From the NCBI GenBank assembly GCA_965603825.1, contig CBFDEM010000004.1:62001-126000 (forward strand): a stretch of 64,000 nt of DNA. The letters run 5' to 3'. The notes beneath the pieces were generated by a model that did not search any database, had not been told where the DNA came from, and saw only the letters and a list, made by a program, of their open reading frames with translations. Every line of letters begins with the position of its first letter. The first letter of the stretch is position 1. Source of the DNA: Blepharisma stoltei ATCC 30299 (Eukaryota > Protista > Ciliophora). Of the stretch, positions 16,388 to 57,253 are shown one piece after another. Both the position numbers and the translations under genes were made by a program.

Positions 16388-19300
16388 TTATTTACTAGGG
16401 ATAATTTTCAATATCGCATTGATTTTCTGCATATATTTTTTTTCATTTCTGAAAAACAGCAAATAAAATCCAAAATAAGCCACAAACGAGCACATAATGA
16501 AGCTAATAAGTGAGATTGTTATTATTTTCATTTGGTCATCAATGACACTTTGCGAGTATTTATCAATTTCATCTATAGCGCTGGTATAAAACTCATCTAT
16601 ATGCTGAAGGTTATCCATAAAATCAACCCAAAATTGCGGATTTGAATTTCCGTATGCGAGAGTATATATATCAAATCTTCATAATTCTTGAGCTGCATAT
16701 ACCCCAAGATCAAAATATGGGCAAACTCCATTATTATTTTCATAAAAAAGCCTTCTAAAATTATCTGACAAAATTGATGAAAACTTAGAATTTCTTAAGG
16801 CTAATTTTTTATTCTCAATGCTAATAATTGTGGAGTTTATTATGGGTGTGCTGCGAGAAAAAGGGGTTGCAAAAGGGAACTGGAGTCATAATCCAAGACC
16901 ATATGTTTCGCCAGACATTTGCTGTCCCCAAACAGCTGCAGTAGTATACAGAATCTGATTTTGTATTAAATCTTTTAATACTTCTGGCCTATCCATTAAA
17001 TATTGTGAGCATTCTTCATAAAGATAAGTCGTGTTTATCAAGCAAAACAATATAACAGCGGCTAGATATGCAAGTATTCTCCACGAATACCTCCAATAGC
17101 TTTTAAAAATATAAGGTTCCATTGAGGGGTTTTGATAAGAAAAAAGGTTTTCAGACTTAGCATGGACTTCTTTGAGTCTTTCCAAAATTGTTTGTTTAAG
17201 CTCAGAATAGCTATTAAAAGCATTTTTTCTTATATTATTTCAAAGTATATTTTCAATCTTAAAAATCGAGTAATAAAACGGGAGTATCATCAAAATGCAT
17301 GCAATAAGTACCGCAGGGCCTAATATTAGTAGAATAATCATTTGAGATTTAAATTCAATCATCATTGACTCTTGGCATTCTATGATATCAATTAATGATT
17401 GATTACAATAGTCGAGCGCCACTCCCCACCCATTAAGCAGCAAAAATCTGTACACGCTTCAAGGATTTTCTGATGGATCTGCCAGTTTCCTTTCAAATTC
17501 ATTTCCCTGAATATATTTTACATTTTTTATAAACATTGAAATTGTATCTATTAAATTTGCTTTTTCCCTTGCGGTTCAATCTTCTGTGCTTCATAAATTC
17601 ATTTTGTCTTCACCTAAAATACTTTGGCTGGAACAGGCATTTCAATTTCTGGAATTTGATATTATGCTGGAATAAACAGTCTCCAGTTCTGACAGAGCTT
17701 GTACATATTTTTCAACTGAAGCTATTATTAATAAATCGCCATTTTCAATCTGAAGTGATGGGACTATCAGCAAAATTTGTGCATAAAGTGCAATTCTTTG
17801 AAAATTTTTCCCAGCTTTTCCAATGTTAACCAGAAGATTCATATCACTTATAAATTTTATATCGGCAAAGGCATAGGCCAAAACCGCGATATTTACTGCT
17901 AAAACAGTTATAATCTGAATAAAAATTACAGAAAAAACAAAAGCGAGGTGTAAAATATTGATGGACCTAGCTGATGAATGTACCATATTGAGGAACTTGT
18001 GCTGGATAGCAGTGACTGATACTTGGGATTTTGCGTCCTGCTGGTCTGATGAATTTTTTGCATCTTCATCAGTAAAAAGATTCATTTTCGAGTCCAAGTC
18101 TTCATCTCGCTGATTTTCTTTATGATAAGAGCTGATTGTACGAAAAGTGTCACATTCTGCAAAATTTACTGATAATTTATTGGTAGCGACCTCTAGCTTT
18201 TCTTGGTCATTTTGTGCAGGTTTATTTGAATTTTGCCATTTAAATATTTCTTCACTGTCATTTATTAGGATAATATATGGAATTTTTATGTTATAAATTT
18301 CATATAATGATAGAATGAGCAAATATTCACCAAAATTTTGCTTTATATGATAAGGAAAATCCAGTTTTCATTCAAAATTTTCTGATTTAAAAAATAATTT
18401 TTTAAGCTTGCACCCTATTAAATTTTCATCAGATTTTCTTAAAATTTTCGCAAAATTTCTTGAATAACGAATTATTTCTCCAGACTCAGAAACTAATGCA
18501 AATTGATGCGAATTTTCTTTTGGCTTAAAGACAAGTATAGCTACAAGTAGGCTATTTATTGAGGTTGCTCATAATTTTCCTGTACAGTCTAATAAGTTGT
18601 TGCGGACTGTTAAAAAAAATCCCTGGCTTAAATCGATTTCTGATACTGAGCTGAACTGAATAAATTGTTTGGATTTTTCTCTGACTCTTTCTTTATAATA
18701 AGGATCAATAAAATTAAAAAAATTGTCACTAGCTATGTTTTTTAAAGGGAGCTTAAAAATTTCTGAAGATTTTGGGTTTGCAAACAGAATTTCTCCAAAA
18801 TTGCTTGGTTCATTAGAAATTACGAGAACCCCATTATTATCATTAAAATAGCTGAAATTGCTAGAATTATTGATAGGGTTTGACTGAGATCTTTCAATTG
18901 CCCTCAGCTTTACCTCAATTAAATTTGATTTTTCATACTCATAAGTGATATCTTTAGTATATGAAACATATAGAGCCAAAGATTCTCTAGAATTCGGGAA
19001 TTTAGTAAAAATCTGATGGTAATTTGAATTTAATTCAGAAATTTCGTTATTTATTCTGGATAAACTTTTTTTCAATTTAGTAAGATCAGGCTTAGTAGAT
19101 GTAATCTCATTTCAAAAATTAAATAAATTTATGCACAATTTTTGGTCTGCTTTTTTTATTGTGTGGAATTGTAAAAAATAATTTGAAAACTGAGAGCTTT
19201 GAGAAGCACAAGCTTCTAAGATATTTTTGTGGCATAAATACTCTTGATAATTAGATTCTAAGCCTGAATCAGGAATATACTTTGTTTTAGCAAGCTTAAT

Positions 19301-20560
19301 TTTGGCTAAAGATTCATCCTGTAAGGTAAAATAGCAGTAATTTGCAGCTCATATAGCTTGAAGTTTGTTTCCATTTAGCCTTTTTTCTATAAAGAAATTC
19401 TCAAATATCTTAATTATTTCATCCTTATGTGCAGTACTATTTGAGCACAATTCGTGTCTAATTGATTTTTCTAAATCATATTGGGAATTTATTTTATTCA
19501 AGTTTTCAGGTATGTCTTTATTTGGTTTTGTTTGTAACTTGATAGAAAATTGAATGATAAATACAGAAGACAAAGGTCCCAATATAATTAATAGGAGGGA
19601 AATAGCTAATGAGTTGTCCATAAGGCGCCCCAAAATAAAAATAAAGGAGAATAAAGCAATAAAACATAGTCTAAGAATAATAACTGTATTGCAAAATATC
19701 GAAAAATAAGGTAAAAGGTTTGCAGTTTCTTTGAGTAAAATCATTGAAAAAAAAATCGCTAAAATTTGTAAATAAATTATATGATCTTTAGCGAATAATG
19801 CAAAAGCAATTGGAAAAATATAAGTAAAAATTGCTATATGAGTATCAATCCTTGAATGTGCCTTTGCATTCAAATTTTTCTCTATAGCAGAATGCCTTAT
19901 TTCAGCCGAAAATTCTGTATAAAATAAATACAATATAAACCCAAATATCAATAGAAAAATAATTGTAATTTTTCATATAGAGCCGACTTCAAAATCAGCT
20001 AGCTGCTTTCCATCTTCATATTCTGAAATTTTATTTTGAGACAAAAAATTATACTTGAAGAAAAGCGAGAAAATCTCAATCGACGGAATTAAAAAAAAAA
20101 TCGATCATAAATAAAAAAGATAATATAAAATAGTAAAGACTTGAGATGGCAAGCTGTAAGAGTAATAAATAGCTATGACCAAAATAATAACACTTGTAAA
20201 GCTTGCATAAGTAAAGGAAAGTAATATAAAAAAGCACTCATCAATTATTCCTAATGCTGAGCAGGTATTATCAATTTTTATGTGTCCTATGACTTCTCAT
20301 ATGATCATATTATTTTTTCAATTAGTAATAGGCATATCAGGGACATATAGTAAGCTAATAACTTGAAGGCATCATATCGTACCCTCAATCGCTATTATCA
20401 GTTTTTGTCTTGTAACAGAATCTTCTTGATTTCTAGTCCTATTAAAGAGCCTGCAATAAAATTCAAAAATTGAGTCCTTGATTGATTTTTCTTTTTTAAA
20501 TTTTCAGAGATTTTGCCTTGAGTCTTGATTTTTGCGTGATTCAGCTTTAGGTTCAGCCAT
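16388..20560 (-). CDS. Copy C: TmcB/TmcC-like PAS membrane protein (~1380 aa)
   Basis: ATG 20560 (MAEPKAESRKNQDSRQNLW), TAA 16388. Introns 17915-17929 (GTAATTTTTATTCAG) and 17507-17521 (GTAAAATATATTCAG), both stop-free. Length consistent with one frame. Confidence 0.9.
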
Positions 20561-20746
20561 AAATGAAATATAAGATGATTAACTTGCATATTATCAAAAA
20601 TCTAAGTATTTATCATCACAACTATAAGTAATTTTAATTTAATTTGAATAGCGATAATTTTTCAATGTTGAAACAAATAAATAATTTATTGAAATTTACT
20701 GAATGTAATTATTTTTTTATTTGAACTTTTCAAAGAAAACATATAT

Positions 20747-21464: not shown

Positions 21465-22567
21465 TTATTTCGGCATAACCTCTTTGTTGAGTAAACTGAA
21501 TTTGACGACCATATTATTTAAAACAGTAAGATATTTTTTTCATTTTTGTAAAAAGGTAAATAAAATCAAATATAAGCTACAAATGAACATAAAATAAAGC
21601 CAGTTAGCGAAAATGCAATAATATTTATTTGGTTGTTAATCACACTTTTTGAGTAATCGTCAATTTCAGTTACAGCGCTATTATAAAAATCAACGATATG
21701 CAGGGTATTTAATGTAAAAGTTAGTATATCAAAAGGAGCAGAAATCGTAAACGCTTAGTATACATATATTATGAAATTATCAGCAAGTACAGCATAGAAA
21801 ACCTGTAAAAATATGTAAAAACAGCTATATGAGTATCAGAATGTGAGTGCGCTTTAGCAATTATTGCCATTTTATATAGGGAATGTCTAATTTCTCCGGA
21901 AAACTGCGTATTTAACAAAATAAGAGCAAATGCAAATATCATTGAAAATATCACCCAAATTTGCCATGATAAATTAACCTCAGAGTCTTTAGAATTGTGA
22001 TTTTGGTATTCTGCAATTTTATTCTGAGGTGAAAGGTTAATAGAGGGTATAAAAAAATAATTTCCATAAGTTAAAAATACTATTGAAAATGTTCAATATA
22101 AAGCTTGGTATGCTATAAGAATAATAAATTATATCAATAAAAGCAATAATAATCAAAAAATTAGTGCAGGTAAATAAAATTGATAAAATCAGATATAGGA
22201 ATTGCCCGAGGATGGCGCAAGATAGCGCCATCCTCAGGCAATTGCTATATTCGCTAATAATCCCTAATTTTGAGCAAACATTGTCAAAGTTTAAGTAGCC
22301 TATAATCTCCCATATAGTCATATTTTTATTTCAATTGCTAATCGGCATATCTGGAAGTCACAGGAAGTTTATTATTGGAGGCATCATATAATACCTTCAA
22401 CTGTTGCTTTACCTTTTTGCCAAGGCATAGAATTTCTTTACTATTGGCTTTACTGTAGAGCTGGCAATAAACCTCGAAAATTGCATTTTTAACTGAGTTT
22501 CTGCTAGGGATTTTCCAAAAATTGTGGGAATTGCCATTTTGATAAGAATCGTTTTAGCTTCAGTCAT
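21465..22567 (-). pseudogene. Copy D: internally deleted, frameshifted family pseudogene (N-terminal TM part fused to the last ~80 codons)
   Basis: ATG 22567 with several frameshifts. WEIIGYLNFDNVCSKLG and FSGEIRHS...KAHS motifs, then at ~21715 it jumps to HIVDFYNSAVTEIDDYSKSVINNQ...KNEK...VMPK-TAA(21465). Confidence 0.85.
22194..22249. mobile_element. 54-bp TA-bounded palindromic insertion (candidate mini-MITE/IES), copy 1
   Basis: TATAG GAATTG CCCGAGGATGGCGC AAGATA GCGCCATCCTCAGG CAATTG CTATA: 25-bp stem with 2 mismatches and a 6-nt loop. Removing 54 bp and leaving one TA restores ISEYLILSI, collinear with paralogs. Confidence 0.8.
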
Positions 22568-37100: not shown

Positions 37101-38309
37101 GAGGACTTGAAGCTTGTCACGATATAAGTATTTTTCTATGAAAAAAAGCTCGAAGAGGTAGATTATTTGGTCTTTATTTTCAGAGTCATTTCATAATAAA
37201 GAATGCCTAAGACATTTTTCTAATTTATATACAGAATTTATTCCAGATAAGCTAGCCGGTAGATTCGTTATAATTTTGCTTTGTAATTTTAAGATATATT
37301 GGTAAATGAACACAGATATCAATGGGCCTAAGATAATCGCTATTAAAATAACTAATAACGAATTATCCATTCAATTCCCTATAATAAATCCAAAAGATAC
37401 TACTGAAATAGCAAAAAATCGAAGAATCAGTGTCAAATTGCAATAGGCTGAAAAATATGGCAGAAATATTATAGTTTCTGCCATCATAATTATTGAGCTA
37501 ACCATCAAAAAGCATTGATAATAAATTATATAATCCTTTACGCTTAATACATAAAGAATTGGGGAAAAGTATGCGAAAATTGATATTTGGAAATCAATTT
37601 TCGAATGAGCCTTTGATTTCAGTATTTTTTTACTTACAGAATGCCTAATTTCACCTGAAAATTCAGTGTACAATAAAATCAAAGGAAAAGTAATAATTAT
37701 CGCAAAAATTATAGAAATTTCTAAAGCAAAATTAACCTCAAAGATCTTAGATTCATCATTGTTCGTGTACTCAGATATATTTTTTAAAGATGTAAAATTA
37801 TATTTCAAAACGACAGAATATAGCACCATAGAAGATATAAAAATCAAATTTACCCAGAACCTGAAAATCCACTTAAATAGGACAACGATAAATCTCGGTA
37901 TGCTCACCGAACGGTGAACCATAAAAACTAAAATCAATATACCTGAAAATATTATAAAATTAGCTACAATTGACAAGTATAAATATGCATCAATAATTCC
38001 TAGTTCCGAGCATATATTGTCAATTCTTAAATACCCAATAATTTCTCATAAAATCATATTATCGCTCCAATCTTTAATTGGGAGGTCTGGAAACCATAAT
38101 AAACTCATTATTTGAAAGCATCAGATTATATCTTCGATTGCTTTGCTAACTTTTTGTCTTAACATAGATATTTCTTCGTCTGCTTTATTGTGATAAAGCT
38201 GATTATAAAGTTCAAAAATCGACTGTTTGATTGTTTTTTGCTTTTTTCTTTTTCACAATCCTTTGCTGGAAGCAGATAATTGATCTATTTCAACTTCAAA
38301 GTCAAGCAT
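34149..38309 (-). CDS. Copy G: TmcB/TmcC-like PAS membrane protein (~1376 aa)
   Basis: ATG 38309 (MLDFEVEIDQ); ends CCG TGA TAA. Introns 35661-35675 (GTATTTTTTATATAG) and 35265-35279 (GTAAGGGATATTCAG). Confidence 0.88.
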
Positions 38310-41800: not shown

Positions 41801-42931
41801 TTCAGAATCTTCTAAGAGTAGCGATTTCCTAAGACATTTTTCTAGTTTATATACACAATTTATTCCGTCTAAACCTTTTGGAAGATTTATAATGAAGCCT
41901 TTTTGACATTTTAAAGTAAACTGATAAATGAAGACAGTTGCTACAGGTCCTAAAATAGTGACTATCAAAATAATTAATATCGAATTATCCATCCAATACC
42001 CAAAAATAAATCCAAAGGATACTACAGAAATAGCAAAAAGCTTAATAGCTAGCGCTAAATTGCAATATGTCGAAAAATACGGTAAAAATACTATAGTTTC
42101 TATTGTCAAAATTATTGAAATCATCAATAAAGCACACTGATAATAAATAATATAATCTTCGTCCAATAATACATAAAATATTGGAGAAAAGTATGATAGC
42201 ATTGCTATATGCACATCAATTTTCGAGTGAGCCTTTGAATTTAATATTTTTGTGCTTAAAGCATGATTTATTTCACCTGAAAATTCAGTATGAAATAAAA
42301 TCAAAGGAAAAGTTATGATCATTGAAAAAATTATAAAAATTTGTAGCATGGCGTTTACCTCAAAGTCTGAGGGCTCATTATCGTTCTGATATTCAGATAC
42401 TTTCCCTGAAGAACTAAAGCTATACTTCAAAAAGATGGAACACAATACCATAGATGGTATAAAAATCAAATTCGATCAGAAACTGAATATTCATTTAAAT
42501 AGTATAAATAATAATCCCGGTAAATTTAAAGAGCGATAGATAATCAAAACTGAAGCCATAATACTGAAAAATATTGTAAAATTAGCAATAATTGATAAGT
42601 ATAAGCACACATCAATAATTCCTAGCTCTGAGCATATATTGTCAAGCCTCAAGTATCCAATAATTTCCCATAGTGCCATATTTTCATCTCAGTCCTTAAT
42701 TAGAAGATTTGGAATTCATAGTAAACTTGTCATTTGAAAACATCATAATAAATCTTCTAGAGCTTTTCCAATTTTTTGTCTAGGAATTGAGCTTTCGTCA
42801 CTAGAATTATTGTGATAAAGTTGGCAGTAAAATTCGAAAATTGACTGTTTAATTGTTTTCTGCTTTTGACTCTTTCATAAAATTTTGCTGAAAGCAGACG
42901 GTTCATTCATTTCAGAATAGAGTTCAAACAT
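38807..42931 (-). CDS. Copy H: TmcB/TmcC-like PAS membrane protein (~1364 aa)
   Basis: ATG 42931 (MFELYSEMNE); ends CCA TGA TAG. Introns 40316-40330 and 39923-39937 (GTAAGAGATATTCAG). Confidence 0.88.
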
Positions 42932-42965
42932 TAATAATTTAATAGAGGTTCAATGATTAAAAAAT

Positions 42966-42983
42966 GCAGGCTTTAAAGCCTGC
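42966..42983. promoter_or_regulatory. Perfect 18-bp palindrome ~35 bp upstream of the copy H start
   Basis: GCAGGCTTTAAAGCCTGC is its own reverse complement. A regulatory role is only inferred from its position. Confidence 0.3.
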
Positions 42984-43556
42984 TTCGAACACTAGAAGAA
43001 ATAGACCATCTTTTAAGAAAGTTTTATTATAAATAAAATTAGCAAACTATTTATTGTTTGCTATTATAAATGGATCTAAAAAAAAATTTAAAAATCGATA
43101 AAGCTTTGTTTTATAGTAAAAACAATGACATATCTAAATTTTTAGAAAAAGTTTAACGAATTATTGAAAATCAAAAATTTCAAAAAAGAAATTACAAGTA
43201 TAAGAATAATTTTATTTTAATCTTTTCGATTTCGTTAATAAATCTTGAATTTATTAAAAATTATTATTCGAAATTTTTATTAAAAGCAGTCACTGAGTGT
43301 TAAAAATTCTAGGAAAATTTAAAGGATTTTATTAATTAATGCTTATCACTTGGAAAATATTCAGAAAATTAGAAATGCAAAAAAACAAGAAAAATGAATA
43401 CCAATGGATTATTTTTTGGATTTGATTCTGTTAGCATTTTTCTCTATCAGAAAGCGCATAATGTATTTATAGCTTATCCCAATTGCTATTTGATTAGAAA
43501 GGAAATAAGAAAAGAGTCACTTATTACTTATATATAAACTAGAATTATTATCCTCA

Positions 43557-46500
43557 TTAAGGAATAATTTTCATAATTGAATTGATTTTTCGCAAATAAT
43601 GTTTTTCTTTCCTAAAAAACTGAAAATATAGTAAAAAATAAATAAACCCTGAGCTCATAGCAAAAACCACAAAAGCCATTGTTATAATTTTGACTTGATC
43701 TTCAATTACACTTTGTGAATACCCATCAATCTCAATAGAAAAATCACGATAAGTTCTAGCCGATTCTTCAAGATTCACAATTCAAAATAATCAAAAATTG
43801 GTGTCTAAATTTGAATAAGTAACAGAGTAACTATCAAAATTTATGATATCTTCAGCGGCAAATGCCCCATAATCAAAATAATATCAATTTGGATCATTTT
43901 CTTGTTCAAAGAAGAGCCTTTTAAATTTTTCTGATAAAATAGGCAAATATTTATGATCCCTCAAAATCAGTCTTGAGCGTTCAACATTTTTTATGTAATT
44001 TTGAAATGTAGGCAAACTATTGACCAAAAAATACTCATTAGGAATATAATTTGCTAATGGCAATCCTCAACGCTCCAATTGAGAATTTGTTGACGCTATG
44101 GCTATTAAGTTTAAAAAAAATTGTCCACGTATAAGCTCTTTAATTATTTCTGGTCTATATGATAAATAATCTGTGCATTTTTTGTAGAGATAAGCTATAT
44201 TTATAATAGAAAACAGTGCAACGACTATAAAATATACAAAGATTCTTCAAATGTATTTTCAGTAATTTTTATAGGTAAAACTCTTATTTGAAGGATTATT
44301 TTTGCTAATTGAAATTTCATTTTGAGAATGAATGCATTTTAGTCTGTCGATTAAGGACTGTTTTAGCTCAAAATAATGCTCATATACGTTTGTCCTTAGA
44401 TTGTTTCAAAGATCACTTTCTATTTTGACAGTAGAATACCAAAATGGTATCATTATGCAAACACATAAGCCAAGAACACCAATCCCCAACATAAGAAAAA
44501 TGAAAATTTGGTCTTTGAAGCCAGACATTATTATTTTTTGGCATTCGATAATTTCAAATAAAGAACTATTGCAGTATGCAAATACTTTTCCATAACTATT
44601 AGCTGTTAAAAATAATGCTTCAGCATCATAATTTTCTGAATTGTTATACTTTCTAACAAATTCATTTCCCTAAATAATTTTTACCGTTTGTAAAAACTCT
44701 GAAATCATATCTAATAAGTTTATTTTCTTATCAGAATTCCATAGCTTTATATTGTCCTCCATAAATATTTCTTTCCCAGAACAATAATTTCACTCTTCTA
44801 CATGAGAAGTAGCATAAAGATATAGACCTTTTAATTCAATCATATAATTGATAATTTTATATCACCCTACTTTTAATATTTGCTCAACTTCAGAAGTTGC
44901 TATAGGTGTAAGCGCCCAAAGAATATGAGTAGCAAAGCCAACATTATGGATTTTATTCCCTATTTTCCCAAGGGAGATAGGGATGTCCATATTTCGTATA
45001 AAATTTATATTAGAGAAGGTATAAAATAGAACTGCAATATTTGTGCCTAGAACAGCGACAATCTATATAAAAAATACTGCTAAAATGATGGCAGCATGCA
45101 AAATATTTATTGACCTTGCCGATGTAGCTATCTGTTTATGATTTCTCAGCTGACGAGCATTTTCTGAGACCTGGGATTTTTCTTCAGAAAAAGCACGGTC
45201 AGTTCCTTGAGGTGTTTCAATTGAGAAATCTTGGTTTAAATTCATTTCAGAATTTGCATAAATATCCTCTATATCTGGATATTCTTTGTAACAAATTTAG
45301 GGAAATTTTCAGAATATCCACAAATTTCTCCAGTTTCTGATATCAATATAACTTGATGCTTGCGTTTTTTAGGCTTAAAAAGCAATATCGACATAAGATA
45401 ATTTTTATGAGAAGTTATCAAGATTTTCCCAGAGCATTCTAAAAGATAATGAGAAGGATCATTTAAAAAAAATCCTCCACTTAAATCAATTTCAGAATTA
45501 GAGGCAAAGTGGATTATTCTACGAATATCTTCATTTAAATCTTCTATATAATAAGAAGGAATAAGGCTTGCTATATTGGTCCCATCAATATTATGATTCG
45601 GAGATTTCAGGATTTCACTGGATTTTGGGTTTGAAAAAAGAATTTCTCCAAAATTTTCTTCTTCACATGAAATAACAAAAATTCCATAAATTTCATTAAA
45701 AAATTCTAAATTTTTTGAAAATGATTTTTTAGCAGTTTTACTTAACAATTGTGACTTATTTTCTAATAAGTTTGATTTTTCTCGGTCAAAAAGAATGCTT
45801 TTAGTATATGAAGCATAAAGGTCTAAAGACTCCTTGGAGTTGCAGAATTTTGTGGTCAACTGGGTAAATTTATTATCTACTATTAATAATTTTTTGTCTA
45901 TCCATAAAAGATTTTTTGAGAGTTTTACAGTATCAGGTCTTAATGAAACTACTTCTTCTCAAAATTTCAATAAATTGATGCATAATTTTAAATCTTTCTT
46001 TTTTATCATATGAAATTCTTGAAAGTATTCAATAAACTGCTTGCTTTCACTTGATAAAGATTCAATTCTTTTACTACATAAGTATTCTTGGAAATCATTT
46101 TCCAAATTTCCTGAAATATTTTTGGTTTTGCTTAACTTAATTTTAGATAGAGACTCGTCTTTTAGCGTGAATATGCAATAGTTTGTTACCCAGATAACCT
46201 GAAGCTTGTCTCGGGATAAGGAATTTTCAATGAAAAAAGTTTCGAAGAGGTAAATTATTTGATTTTTCTGCTCAGGATCATTTAATATTAGTGAATGTCT
46301 AATAACTTTTTCTAATTTATATGCAGAAATAATAGCAGATAAAGTAGTTGGAAGCCTCATAATCATATTTCTTTGCATTTTCAATACAAATTGATAAATT
46401 AGCGCAGCTGCTAATCGTCCGAAGACTATTGTATTTAAAAGTATTAATAGAGAATTGTCCATTCAGTTCCCTAAAATAAATCCAAAAGACACTAAAGAAA

Positions 46501-47455
46501 TAGCAAAAAGTCTAAGAATTAGTGTCAAATTACAATAGACCGAAAAATAAGGCCAAAAAATTAGAGATTCTATGGTCAAAATAATTGAAATAACCATCAA
46601 AAGACATTGATAATAAATAATGTAATCTTTATCAAATAACACGTAAAATATTGGGGAAAAATATGATAGCATTGCTATATGCAAATTAATTTTCGAGTGA
46701 GCCTTTGATATAAGTATTTTTTTACTTACTGAGTGCCTAATTTCACCTGAAAATTGAGTATGGAATAAAATCAATGGAAAATTAACAATCATTGCACAAA
46801 TTATTAAAATTTGTATAGTAATATTTGCCTCAAAACTTGCCGGCTCATTATTGTGCTCATATTCAGTAATTCTTTCTGCAGGCGTAAAGCTATATTTCAA
46901 AAAGATGGAATACAATACCAAAGATGGTATAAAAATCAAATTTGCCCAGAAATTGAAAATCCATTTTAATAGCAAAAAGACTCATCTTGGCAAATTAGCT
47001 GAACGATAAATCATAAAACTCAAAGTAAATATTCCAAAAAATAATACAAAATTAACCACAATTGATAAATATAAGTATAGCGCTTTCCCGAGGATGGCGC
47101 GGAATGGCGCCATCCTCGGGAAAGCGCTATATGCATCAATAATCCCAAATTCTGAGCATATATTGTCAATTCTAAAGTATCCAATAATTTCTCAAATCTC
47201 TATATTGTTTTTTCAATCTTTTATTGGAAGATTTGGAATTCATAGTAGGCTCATTATTTGAAAGCACCAAACCAAGTCTTCAATCTCTTTTCCAACCTTT
47301 TGCCAAAGCAGTGATATTTCTTCATTAGTTCCATTATGATAAAGTTGGCAGTAAAACTCAAAAACTGATTCTTTAATCGTTTTTAGCTTTTTATTCTTTC
47401 ATAATCATTGGCAGGAACCATATGATTGATTTATCCCAGCTTCAGGTATAGACAT
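43557..47455 (-). pseudogene. Copy I: family gene with a ~310-bp frameshifting internal deletion and a 54-bp palindromic insertion
   Basis: ATG 47455, TAA 43557. Introns 45063-45077 and 44670-44684. FPKFVTKN is fused out of frame to YPDIEDIYANSEM at 45280, giving TAG at 45269; span is not divisible by 3. Confidence 0.85.
47076..47131. mobile_element. 54-bp TA-bounded palindromic insertion (candidate mini-MITE/IES), copy 2
   Basis: TATAG CGCTTT CCCGAGGATGGCGC GGAATG GCGCCATCCTCGGG AAAGCG CTATA: perfect 25-bp stem, 6-nt loop, 33/56 GC. Removal restores IDAYLYLSI, the same peptide as the empty site in copy G (~37970-37995). Confidence 0.85.
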
Positions 47456-47703
47456 AAATGAAACAGATAAATGGAAATTTTAATAAAAAAACGCAATATA
47501 TGTCTATCTTAAAATATTTGCTTTTTTATTTGTGTTAAAAGATTAATAGGCAACGCTTAATTTGCAAAAAATATAAGAACTCTCGTTTGTAATATAAAAT
47601 ATAAGGTATCTTATATAAAATGAAAAGAGCTTCCGTAATGCTGTTTTTTCTTAATAAAAAATAAGGTTATGCATTATAAAAGAATAATCTATAATATATC
47701 GGA

Positions 47704-50700
47704 TTATGATGGAATAATTTCCATCATTAAATTTATTTTCTGTAAATACTGTTTTTCTCTCCTAAAAAACACGAAATATTGTGTAAAGTATATTATAATT
47801 GAGCTTGCAATAAAAAATGAAAACGCCGCTACAATGGTTTTAATCTGATCTTCAACTACACTTTGAGAATATTGGTCAATTTCATCAGTTAGTTCACTAT
47901 AATTGACAATCAATGTGTCAATATTTCTAAGCCAATTTAATCATAGCAAAATTAATTTGTTGGAATGGATGATTACATAGCTGTCAAATCTTACCAATCC
48001 TTCCGCAGCATATACTCCAAAAATAAAATATTTTGATCAAAAATCATAATGGCTTTCATAAAGTTTAGACCTAATATTTTGTGATAAAATTGGCAAGTAC
48101 TTTGGATCCCTTACCATTATTTTTGAGCGGCTAAATCTTAATATATCCTTTTGAAATGCTGCTTCACTGTTCATCAAAGGATATTCACTAGGAGTTTTAT
48201 TTACTGATAAAAGTCCTCAATTTCTGAACTGAGACTCAGTAGCTGATAACCCTATAGAATTTTCCAGCATTTGCTCATGGATTATTTCTTTTATTATTTC
48301 AGGTCTATAAGCTAAATAATCTGTGCACTTTTCATAAAGATAAGTTATATTAATTAACGAAAACATCGTAACAGCTGAAAAATATATGCAAAGCCTTCAT
48401 ATCAATCTTCAATTATTTTTGAAATTAAACTGAGAACTAGTAAAATTTCTATCATTAATTAGCATATCACGCTGATAATGGACAGATTTAAGTCTTTTTA
48501 ATAATGCCAATTTTATTTCAGGATGATAATATACTTTTTTTCTTAAATTATTTCACAAATTGCTTTCAATTTTTGCATTAGAGCACCAAAAAGGGATCAT
48601 ACAGCAAATGCATAAAATAAGTACACCAATCCCTAATACAAGTAAAATAAACATATCCCTTTTAAAGTCAAGCATAATTGATTTTTGGCAGTCCATTACT
48701 TCATATAAAGAATGGTTGCAATACTGAAAAGTGTCTCCAATTCCATTAACATACAAAAAAGAAGCTTCATATGAATAGTCTTCTGAATTATTGGCTTTTC
48801 TGATCATTTCATTTCCCTATATAATTTTTACAGTCTGAATTACTTGTGAAATCATGCCTAATAAATTTACTTTTTTATTGTGCTCTCAATTATATAGCTT
48901 TATTTTTTCATTAATAAAAATTTCTTGTCCTGAGCAATAATTTCAATTTTCTAATTGAGAAGTAACATTTAGATATATGGCTTTTAATTCAGAAATAAAA
49001 GATTCTAATCTAATTCATGACGTTGATATAGCGAGCTCAGTGCCAAAATTTTTATAATCTCCAAGCCTCCAAAGGATGCTTGAAGCTAATGATATATTTT
49101 GCAATTTTTTAGCTACTTTGCCTATTGTGATAGGAAGATCCATGTTTTTAATAAAATCTATGTTTGAATATGCGTAACATAGAACGGCAATATTTGTGCT
49201 TAAAACAGCAAAAATCTGCATAAATATTACTGATAAAATAAAAGCAATATGCAAAATATTTATTGACTGAGAAGATTTTTTCAATAATCGAAGAAATTTA
49301 TTTCTAGGTAAATTTTTGAATGGTTTGTATTTTTCTTTAGTTTCTGATCGATTGCTTTTGGCTGTTTCTGAAGATTCATTGATACTAGTTTGATTTGAAA
49401 TAATTTCAGGATTAACGCAATCTTCTTCTGAAATATGATATAGTCAGTTTTTATTTCCTTCTGAGTTTAATGATCTTATTGAGTTTAGTGATAAAGGACA
49501 GCTTATTAAGTTTGCTTTCTCTTTTTTGCATTTTTTAAGCGCCTTATTTTTATTTATTCAATCTTTGATTTCTTCATGATCATTAATTAATAATGCATGA
49601 AGTATTTTTAATCGGTTTATTTGAAAATAAGATAAAATCAAGATAGTCTGACATTCACAGTTTTTTAAATGATAAGGGATTGATAATTGCAAGTTAAAAT
49701 TTTCGAGTTCGGGAAATACATTTTTAAGACTATGTCCTTTCAAATCATCCTTAAATTTTTCTGCTGCTAAAGGAAAATCTTCGGAATAATCGAAAATTTC
49801 TCCATCCTCAGAAATCAATGCGATTTGACGATTAGTTTGCTTTTTCTGAAAAATAAATATTAAAACAAGATAATTGTCAATTGAGGTTATTATCATTTTT
49901 CCTGTGATTTCTATTAGAAAATTTGTCGGGAGTTTCAAGAAAAATCCTTCTTTTAAATCAATTTCTGAGCTTGAGCCATAATGAATAAGCCAATTAATTT
50001 CGTCTTTTAATTTTCCGCTATAGAATGAAGGAATAAAGTCCATAATGCTGCTCCCATCTGCAAATTTAATAATTTCATTAGCTTTTGTATTAGAAAAAAG
50101 AATTTCACCAAAATTTTCTTCTTCTCCTGATATTACAAAAATTCCATTTGCATCATTAAAGCAGCTAGGATTTCTTGAATAAGAACTTATAGCGCTTTTC
50201 TCATATGATTTTAATTTATTTTCAAGCAAATTAGATTTTTCTCAGTCAAAAAGTATATCTTTTGCATATGAGGCATAAAGCTCTAAAAAATCTTTAGAGT
50301 AAAAAAATTTTGCTGTCAATTGGCTGTATTGATTATTAATGGCTAATATCTTTTCATCAATCCAATTCAGTTTTTTTACCAATCATTTGAGATCAGGTTT
50401 GGACGCAGTTATTTCTTCTCAGAATTTTAATAAATTGAAACACAGTTTGTGATCTTTCTTTTTAATTAGATTTAATTGTTGAAAATAATCAATAAATTGA
50501 ACTGATTCATCTGATGAAGAATTTTGAATATTTTTATTTGATAAATATTCTTGAAAATTTGCTTCTAAATTTAATTCTGAAATATCCATGGTCTTTGTAA
50601 GCTTAACTTTGGCTAAAGACTCATCTTTTAACGTAAATAAACAGTAGTTTGCTATCCAGATACTTTCAAGTTTATTTCGGCAAAAGGGTTTTTCTATATA

Positions 50701-56000: not shown

Positions 56001-57253
56001 AATGATTTGTCTTTTAGTGTAAATAAACAATAATTTGTAGCTCAGGCAACTTGAAGCTTGTCTCCATGGAAAAAGTGTTCTGTAAAGAAGGTTTCAAATA
56101 GATAAATAATATGATCTTTATGCTCTATGTCGTTGCCACACAAAAAATTTCTCAAAGATTTTTCTAGCTGATACTGAGAATTTATTCCTGCCAAGCCTGC
56201 TGGAGGATTGCTTGAGGTGCTATTTAATTTGAGTTTCCGAGTGTATTGAATCACAAATAAAGCTGATAATGGGCCTAAAACAATTGCTGATAAAATCGTA
56301 AATAGGGCATTATCCATTATTATACCCAAAATAAATCCAAATGATATTACAATAATAATAAAAAGCTGGAGAATCAGTATAAAATTGCAATAAAATGAAA
56401 AATATGGTAAAAGCTTCATAATTTCAAAAATTATAATTATTGAAAAAGCCATCATAGCAATTTGAAAATAAATCATATAATCATCATCAAACAATATATA
56501 AAATATTGACGAAAAATATGTGAAAAACGCTATATGAGCATCAATTTTTGAATGTGCTTTTGATTTTACTATTTTACTGCTCACAGAATGTCTTATTTCG
56601 CCTGAAAATTCAGCATGAAAAATAATTAAAGGAAAATTTATAATTATTGAAAGTATGATCAAAAGTTTTAAAATAAAGGTAATCTTAAAATCTGATGTAT
56701 CGCTGCTATTTTCGTACTCAGTAGCATTATAGTCTGACAGAAAGTTGTATTTCAGAAAAATGGTAAATAAAACCACTGAAGGGATAAAAAATATTGCTAT
56801 TCATATATTTAAAAATCATTTAAGTGCAATAAATAATATTTTTGGCAAACTCACAGATCGATGATAGTCAGCAATTGTACACACAAGAATAGTTAATGAA
56901 ATCATTAAAGTAATTGAAATCGCTAGATATAAGTATTCATAAAAATTTCCGAATGCTGAGCAAATATTGTCAAGCCTTATGTATCCAACAATTTTTCATA
57001 ATGTCATATAGTCTTTTCAATCTGTAATTGGGAGATTTGGGGTTCACATTAGGCTTGCCATTTGAAGACTCCAAATTATGCTATGAATTGCCCTTTCAAC
57101 TTTTTGCCAATTGTCAGATCTTTCTTCCATAGCCTTATTGTGATAAATTTGGCTATATACCTCAAATATTGAAGCTTTTATACTCCTCCTTTCTTTTTTA
57201 GCTCAAAAGCCTTTATTTGAAGACTCCATAAATTCACCTTCATATGTAAGCAT
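53084..57253 (-). CDS. Copy K: TmcB/TmcC-like PAS membrane protein (~1379 aa)
   Basis: ATG 57253 (MLTYEGEFME), TAG 53084 (MKIIP*). Introns 54596-54610 (GTATTTTTTAAATAG) and 54197-54211 (GTAATTTTTATGTAG). Confidence 0.9.

Follow-up and report, generated by a model that had tools for sequence, protein, structure and literature searches.

Genome editing in ciliates is usually seen as a process that clears transposon-derived DNA from the soma, and in Blepharisma MITEs have been proposed as a main source of IESs. Stowaway-like MITEs, which derive from Tc1-mariner transposons, are short, non-coding elements with TIRs and a TA target-site duplication; they are dispersed, polymorphic and depleted from coding sequence. 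In Paramecium, IES ends follow the consensus TA-YAG, and mobile IESs, reportedly described by Sellis et al. in 2021 and related in this form by a citing preprint, are said to be homologous elements at non-homologous sites. Rickettsia palindromic elements (RPEs) are bacterial, selfish palindromes of 100-150 bp that can sit in frame inside genes. Foldback transposons extend over hundreds to thousands of base pairs and contain sub-repeats, and parvoviral terminal repeats undergo a hairpin flip-flop.

For Blepharisma, the published IES lengths show a first peak at 65 bp and a periodicity of 10-11 bp (PMC9942856 and its SI), and, according to the authors, the excisase is unable to work on loops that are very short (PMC9942856). 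IES classes of ~153 and ~174 bp carry the end signature TATAgnnnTTT, with one class being largely a palindromic repeat family (PMC9942856). The somatic genome of B. stoltei ATCC 30299 has been published with a size of 41 Mbp in 64 telomere-to-telomere contigs and with UGA read as Trp (PMC9942806). In the portions covered here, the two genome papers and their SI describe BogoMITE, BstTc1, palindromic IESs of ~153 and 230 bp, and somatic LINE-like repeats (PMC9942856, PMC9942806).

The window, that is, the whole stretch of 64,000 nucleotides of B. stoltei DNA analysed here, contains at positions 47076-47131 a short palindrome that combines features of several of these systems. With Stowaway-like MITEs it shares its shortness, the absence of coding sequence, TIRs, a TA duplication, many dispersed copies, polymorphism, and depletion from coding sequence. 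Unlike these MITEs, its 52-bp body consists of nothing but two arms and a 5-6-nt loop, and conservation is confined to the 4-5-bp tips and the centre instead of extending over the whole TIR. Comparison of this short, multi-copy, non-coding, TIR-bearing element with empty sites (the orthologous site in the public run X8, the sites in paralogues, and an 18-aa gap in related proteins) reveals the TA duplication. The likeness to the ~153- and ~174-bp IES classes, judged by their published descriptions, comprises the same organism, TA-type boundaries, a palindromic architecture and, for subfamily A, the signature TATAgnnnTTT, which the subfamily A end TATAGCGCTTT matches; those families are, however, confined to the germline, have lengths of 153 bp or more and are excised, whereas the present copies measure 53-54 bp and are somatic. 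Measured against Blepharisma IESs as a whole, the element has ends of the TA/TAT type but is present in the soma and is shorter than ~65 bp. Paramecium mobile IESs likewise begin with TA followed by YAG (here TA-TAG) and occur as homologous elements at non-homologous sites, but they are removed from the soma, and these stay. As with RPEs, in-frame palindromes add a peptide to their hosts (P0121 and a Cys-rich protein on C61); RPEs are nevertheless bacterial, longer and of another mechanism, and the in-frame copies here form a minority that survived selection. The near-total inverted repeat and the occurrence of both loop orientations (L044/L050 and L012/L014) may be likened to foldback and parvoviral repeats, although the element is far smaller than foldback elements and has no sub-repeats, and the rolling hairpin serves as an analogy only.

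This is a real, recently active and apparently undescribed family of palindromic micro-MITEs of the Blepharisma somatic genome. A 54-bp somatic palindrome is absent from the covered text of the two Blepharisma genome papers and their SI, and the element termini and core have no occurrences in the SI appendix of PMC9942856, a search that an entry listed under a RepeatModeler name would escape.

The palindrome and its family

The element at 47076-47131 belongs to subfamily A. These coordinates include both flanking TA dinucleotides and carry no strand; the body spans 47078-47129 (52 bp), and the net insertion amounts to 54 bp. Structurally, it is composed of a left arm (47076-47100, plus strand) with a TATA tip, a variable middle and the GATGGCGC core, the loop GGAATG (47101-47106, plus strand), which reads CATTCC in oppositely oriented copies, and a right arm (47107-47131, plus strand) that is the exact reverse complement of the left one. 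The two 25-nt arms are 100% complementary around the 6-nt loop, and the full sequence reads TATAGCGCTTTCCCGAGGATGGCGC-GGAATG-GCGCCATCCTCGGGAAAGCGCTATA. Folded as single-stranded DNA, it reaches -33.6 kcal/mol, with z = -11.6 relative to shuffles. Its GC content is 58.9% over 56 bp, compared to 27.8% for the whole window, and the core CCGAGGATGGCGC occurs four times in the window against 0.08 expected occurrences. The minus-strand host frame runs through the element as YSAFPRMAPFRAILGKAL and is free of stops in the TGA=Trp code. Sequence, arms and frame are thus in agreement with the initial annotation, which had described a perfect 25-bp stem, a 6-nt loop, 59% GC and an open host frame. The second copy of the window (22194-22249, no strand assigned) is a subfamily B element with the loop AAGATA and arms that are 92% complementary. 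One change in its right arm (CCTCAGG) is private, and its asymmetric tip (GGA/GCA) also occurs in L018. An intron identity was considered for the element and rejected, as it has no GT..AG and a deposited gene model reads across an element copy.

The somatic assembly (41.46 Mb, 64 contigs) was searched with a pattern search, a covariance model built from 42 copies, and a core search. Together, these searches recovered at least 55 copies of 55-56 bp each, located on 36 contigs and falling into six subfamilies. These searches, of which the covariance-model scan had been proposed in the initial annotation, extend the family well beyond the two copies known at that point, and the many dispersed copies bear out its description as TA-bounded, MITE- or IES-like palindromes. 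It had also been envisaged that only two copies might exist, derived from one insertion spread by conversion; this fails on the number of copies and on the window pair itself, whose members belong to different subfamilies. Flanks are unrelated among copies, the sole homologous-flank pair being the two window copies at 47076 and 22194. At least 50 of 53 copies have TA/TATA ends, and arm mismatches affect 94 of 1325 arm positions in these 53 copies.

Subfamily A comprises nine somatic copies with the loop GGAATG and arms that are identical throughout, while subfamily B is the largest, with ~30 somatic copies, the loop AAGATA or AAAATA, and a pairwise difference of ~9%. The remaining subfamilies have 5-nt loops and add 53 bp to their hosts: C (four somatic copies, loop ATTGA), D (three somatic copies, loop GCAAT), E (four somatic copies, loop GCAAT) and F (two somatic copies, loop GGAAT, one of which is L044). 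As in A, the copies of D show zero divergence. Every subfamily keeps the TATA tips and the centre GATGGCGC-N5-6-GCGCCATC. Between these conserved parts, arm positions 5-17 differ wholly between subfamilies with complementarity kept, as in CCCGAG/CTCGGG, CCTGGT/ACCAGG, CCTATA/TATAGG and CAGGTA/TACCTG. Furthermore, on both sides of subfamily A elements, the outer arm resembles that of D and the inner arm that of B.

Among the 29 distinct sequences, both-side changes occur at 12 of the 25 pairs, and 93.7% of cells are paired. The number of both-side-changed cells is 66, compared to 18 +/- 3.5 in shuffles (none of 500 shuffles reaches 66) and at most 14 in slid controls. The covariation of the arms, first noticed between two copies, is therefore stronger than it had seemed and runs through all six subfamilies.

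An autonomous transposon sharing these termini, which the initial annotation had suggested looking for, was not found in the somatic genome, and neither were solo termini or a longer element with these ends. The published TIRs of Bogo and BstTc1, CTCCCCCCCCCCCTCCGTGAGCG (TSD TAA) and GTACCCCCCCCCTCGTTTG (TSD TATA), are unlike the element terminus TAGCGCTTTCCCGAGG. Several candidate relatives were rejected. Two exact 13-mers on C18 and C39, taken as possible solo termini, run on into unrelated sequence, with ~0.65 such matches expected by chance. On C2 and C50, what looked like solo arms proved to be full copies that have decayed. Matches to the core with a 6-nt loop on 11 metagenome contigs (45-68% GC) are chance palindromes without TATAG tips or family arms. 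A derivation of the element from a longer palindromic IES cut at internal TAs was likewise discarded, since no TA is present in the loops of A, C, D, E and F.

Host genes, target sites and reading frame

On its minus strand, the window (positions 1-64000) carries at least 13 paralogues of a ~1400-aa multi-pass membrane protein, which form a tandem array. Long ORFs appear in the window only when TGA is read as Trp, and the top matches at the protein level are annotated B. stoltei proteins. For the protein family of the array, no Pfam domain scores above threshold, and a match to TmcB-TPR is weak and sub-threshold. Several members of the array are split or broken, and an intact ORF of 1396 aa lies at 16391-20578. 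The host of the A copy (43560-47479, minus strand) is a pseudogene paralogue of this protein, in which residues 1-710 and 813-1388 lie in different frames; ~100 codons are missing, and the frame shifts near 45285. The host of the B copy (21533-22550, minus strand) is a decayed paralogue remnant with several frameshifts and a large internal deletion, lacking residues ~250-1280. These frame changes and missing codons confirm that both hosts are broken genes.

In the alignment of the paralogues, the A copy (47076) and the B copy (22194) occupy the identical TA of a homologous codon, in two paralogues with an identity of ~70%. At this codon, most paralogues have TG or TC. Two have TA but are unfilled, namely an intact paralogue (gcaTAttta, 37984-37985, minus strand) and another member of the array (56934-56935, minus strand). 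The initial annotation had placed both copies at one Tyr codon, had noted that most paralogues are without TA there, and had listed two Tyr copies as empty; all three statements hold. Given a target of TA only, the chance of a double insertion into the same TA is ~4e-5 genome-wide and ~9e-4 when three copies in this 66-kb array are taken as given. The coincidence is real and improbable under a TA-only target. Clustering of elements is mild, with 5 pairs within 25 kb against 1.8 expected (p = 0.04), and a pseudogene-rich array that tolerates insertions explains this clustering but not the exact shared site. Both filled sites have GGGATTATT-N6-TA and, downstream, TTTATCAATT, whereas the two empty-TA paralogues differ there. 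L044, a subfamily F copy with a net insertion of 53 bp (G000:C4:59911-59965; L044:1501-1555), lies 2 kb upstream of the window, at a different site within the C-terminal region of a further paralogue from this array, which brings three family members within 50 kb.

Across 53 reconstructed sites, the symmetrised target logo consists of TA within a weak A.TA.T, with at most 0.14 bits elsewhere, and shows no extended target motif. Together with the single homologous-flank pair, this logo speaks against the site selectivity that had been attributed to the element. As a separate observation, ATTGATAA is found upstream of three sites (L002, L003 and L009).

Most copies lie outside long ORFs. Sites within an ORF of at least 200 aa account for 17%, compared to 39% of control TA sites taken from the same loci (p = 4e-4). 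Among the copies in long ORFs, frame-0 read-through occurs at L003 (the window copy at 47076), L010, L032 and L034. At L015 (a TPR protein), L020 (an ankyrin protein), L022 (an rve-type integrase) and L027, the TAG of the element itself stands in the host frame, with ORFs of ~300-320 aa. The in-frame position, at first considered a trait of the element, is contradicted by these four copies and by the 53 bp that subfamilies C-F add. In-frame copies are those passed by selection.

The subfamily A copy L010 (G000:C22:103368-103423; L010:1487-1542) is exonised. The deposited AAA-ATPase-like protein P0121 (1013 aa, PF09820) includes the C22 element at 100% identity at residues ~417-434, and two B. 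stoltei paralogues, P0001 and P0002, are without exactly those 18 residues, which fall in a poorly conserved linker. The deposited P0121 model has no intron at this position, which indirectly suggests that splicing does not remove the element. A subfamily B copy, L011, lies 2.3 kb from L010. In L032, of subfamily A (G000:C61:81733-81788; L032:1487-1542), the ORF of a Cys-rich repeat protein of at least 706 aa is read through at a Tyr codon and yields the same 18-aa peptide. L022, of subfamily B (G000:C50:398278-398333; L022:1487-1542), splits the ORF of an rve-type integrase directly before the IDLF motif, with TAG in frame; a 58-aa fragment of this ORF matches rve with E = 3e-6. L022 represents a somatic case of a mobile element inserted into a retroelement-like gene.

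Age, somatic residence and length

Contigs of four public runs were compared with window positions 42300-48200. The contigs of X8, which carries the same species label and stems from the somatic-genome study, are 4-5% diverged in this region, with the nearest paralogue being 76% identical; X8 is probably the second sequenced strain, HT-IV. An X8 contig of 2121 bp covers 45617-47075 and 47130-47790 with 95-96% identity. At the joint 47075->47130, it skips 54 bp from TA to TA, and the orthologous empty site reads ..AAG-TA-TGC.. in this run. The empty site implies a TA target duplication, a net insertion of 54 bp and a presence/absence polymorphism between strains, and thereby verifies the length and the duplicated TA of the initial annotation.

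The 47076 copy is identical to the eight other copies of subfamily A. Taken together, nine identical copies and the empty site in X8 indicate that the 47076 copy inserted recently, at a time when its host gene was already broken. It had been suggested that an ancestral IES occupied this site and was excised from functional copies and retained in dead ones. This suggestion finds no support, as the identity of the A copies and the absence from the orthologous X8 locus mark the element as young.

With a probability of roughly 70%, we interpret the element as a non-autonomous, nearly all-palindromic MITE, consisting of a 52-bp body and the duplicated TA, that inserted recently and is too short for IES excision. 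We postulate that a trans-acting transposase would cut at the TATA(G/C) tips and recognise the hairpin tip GATGGCGC-N5-6-GCGCCATC. At 53-54 bp, the element would lie one helical turn below the smallest excisable IES class (65 bp), so that copies in soma-destined DNA would enter the macronucleus. Somatic survival would be expected only where insertions are harmless, such as in intergenic DNA, dead paralogues and tolerant protein linkers. A frame-0 copy in a linker would add 18 residues (YSAFPRMA..AILGKAL). From the published length distribution, we infer that the element combines IES-like ends with a length below that of excision. In X6 (84 Mb of contigs, from the project of the germline study), the element bin amounts to ~19,550 compared to ~55 for the flanks; these values add up the depths of contigs and do not represent copy numbers. 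By the same contig-depth sums, the ratio of element bin to flanks is ~7-fold in X3 and ~3-fold in X8. A total of 175 X6 contigs map to the region, and many unrelated flanks enter at the element boundaries. If X6 is germline-enriched, as we infer, most copies would presumably be germline-limited and nested in longer IESs.

As an alternative, which we consider unlikely, the element could be an excisable germline IES that is kept in the soma by scan-RNA-type protection from the maternal macronucleus. Its TA-bounded, TATAG-like ends resemble those of Blepharisma and Paramecium IESs, and IES retention forms a continuum according to the published Blepharisma paper. The polymorphism is a precise 54-bp gap from TA to TA, and the empty site of X8 could alternatively reflect somatic excision in that strain, not germline absence. 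Moreover, many more copies appear in X6. Retention of an excisable IES is disfavoured, however, by the contigs of X3 and X6, in which no empty form of the 47076 site occurs, and by the published lengths, which start at ~65 bp with a 54-bp class absent. Copies whose TAG is in frame have remained in ORFs without being excised, and nine identical copies at unrelated sites would require transposition in any case. At other positions of the region (window 43088-43284, 43522, 43892 and 45259), the X6 contigs show breaks, non-matching extensions or, at 45259, a 30-bp omission that is absent from the other runs; these features are consistent with germline-specific insertions (IESs) or with variants of that library.

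The shared TA could in principle be accounted for by a single ancestral insertion before the duplication of the paralogues, followed by precise losses elsewhere and, at 47076, by its replacement with an A copy through element-templated repair. The low chance of ~1e-3 for two copies at exactly one TA in paralogues favours such a history, and the common tips and core could prime templated repair. We nonetheless regard it as quite improbable: the X8 orthologue is empty, the element is missing from at least 11 further paralogues, of which two have an intact TA, and eight dispersed copies match the A copy without a difference although the paralogues are only ~70% identical. Many precise losses plus a replacement would be needed.

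The strong covariation and the very stable hairpin would also be expected of a host-functional structure under base-pairing selection, for example a regulatory DNA cruciform, a transcription terminator or the precursor of a hairpin small RNA. The Rfam search gave generic hairpin matches only, with the best at 32.9 bits compared to a gathering score of 79. Weak matches to miRNA-precursor models are among the sub-threshold ones, but scores range from 17 to 33 bits against gathering scores of 65-160. Copies lie in pseudogenes, intergenic DNA and ORFs on either strand, the element at 47076 is polymorphic between strains, and resident copies decay asymmetrically, as described below. The putative RNA run X9 provides four low-depth contigs of ~155 nt at the window region, none of which covers the element. 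Consequently, a host function has very little probability. An adapter or assembly artefact, which the initial annotation had also envisaged and to which the hairpin shape and contigs breaking at the palindrome centre might point, can be dismissed, because each of 55 sites has flanks of its own and a TA duplication, the element recurs in contigs of several runs that stem from two studies, X8 lacks it precisely, a deposited protein model includes it, and X3 contigs from a different study, despite their break at the palindrome centre, confirm both element junctions and thus exclude an artefact of long-read assembly.

A young and still polymorphic MITE family is thus resident in the somatic genome of a ciliate, and an annotated protein includes one of its copies. 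Because the elements fall short of the smallest excised IES class by one helical turn, they offer a direct way to study how small the substrates of the excisase can be and what becomes of mobile elements outside that limit. If the escape by size is wrong, the family would be one more MITE, which is useful for annotation. It forms part of several gene models or interrupts them.

Symmetry of the arms

In the inner arm of true B copies, 12 private changes affect one arm, compared to one symmetric change. These one-arm changes indicate that resident copies decay like neutral DNA and that symmetry belongs to the copying of the element, not to its upkeep in place. Selection at resident sites would not account for the symmetry, given that copies there decay in only one arm at a time. 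The orientation of the loop is independent of asymmetric arms: between L044 and L050, the arms are identical but the loops read ATTCC and GGAAT, respectively, and the same holds for L012 compared to L014/L015. Such flip-flop loops imply an inversion between the arms or a hairpin intermediate. Overall, the symmetry fits two models equally: in the first, arms convert or recombine with each other or a fold-back intermediate forms during transposition; in the second, symmetric masters alone can transpose. In the mechanism proposed here, complementarity would be restored or required in each copying round, either through a fold-back or hairpin intermediate or through arm-to-arm conversion. With compensated arms in six subfamilies and asymmetric decay of resident copies, the family constitutes a natural data set on palindrome symmetry.

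A more far-reaching interpretation, which we put forward as speculative and with the odds clearly against it, is a class of fold-back micro-transposons. In this class, one arm would template the other in each copying round, the hairpin tip would be recognised, the length would stay just under the geometric limit of the PiggyBac-derived excisase, and an unrecognised structural or homology-guided target choice would underlie the same-TA hit. Templating between the arms would explain the symmetry of young copies, the modular and symmetric arm swaps, and the loop flip-flop. If true, this would be the first described ciliate element that evades editing by its smallness and colonises the soma, even its exons.

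A recurrent change was observed in two B copies, L002 and L017, in which CTCGGG has independently become CTCAGG in the right arm; a CpG-type transition hotspot may be responsible.
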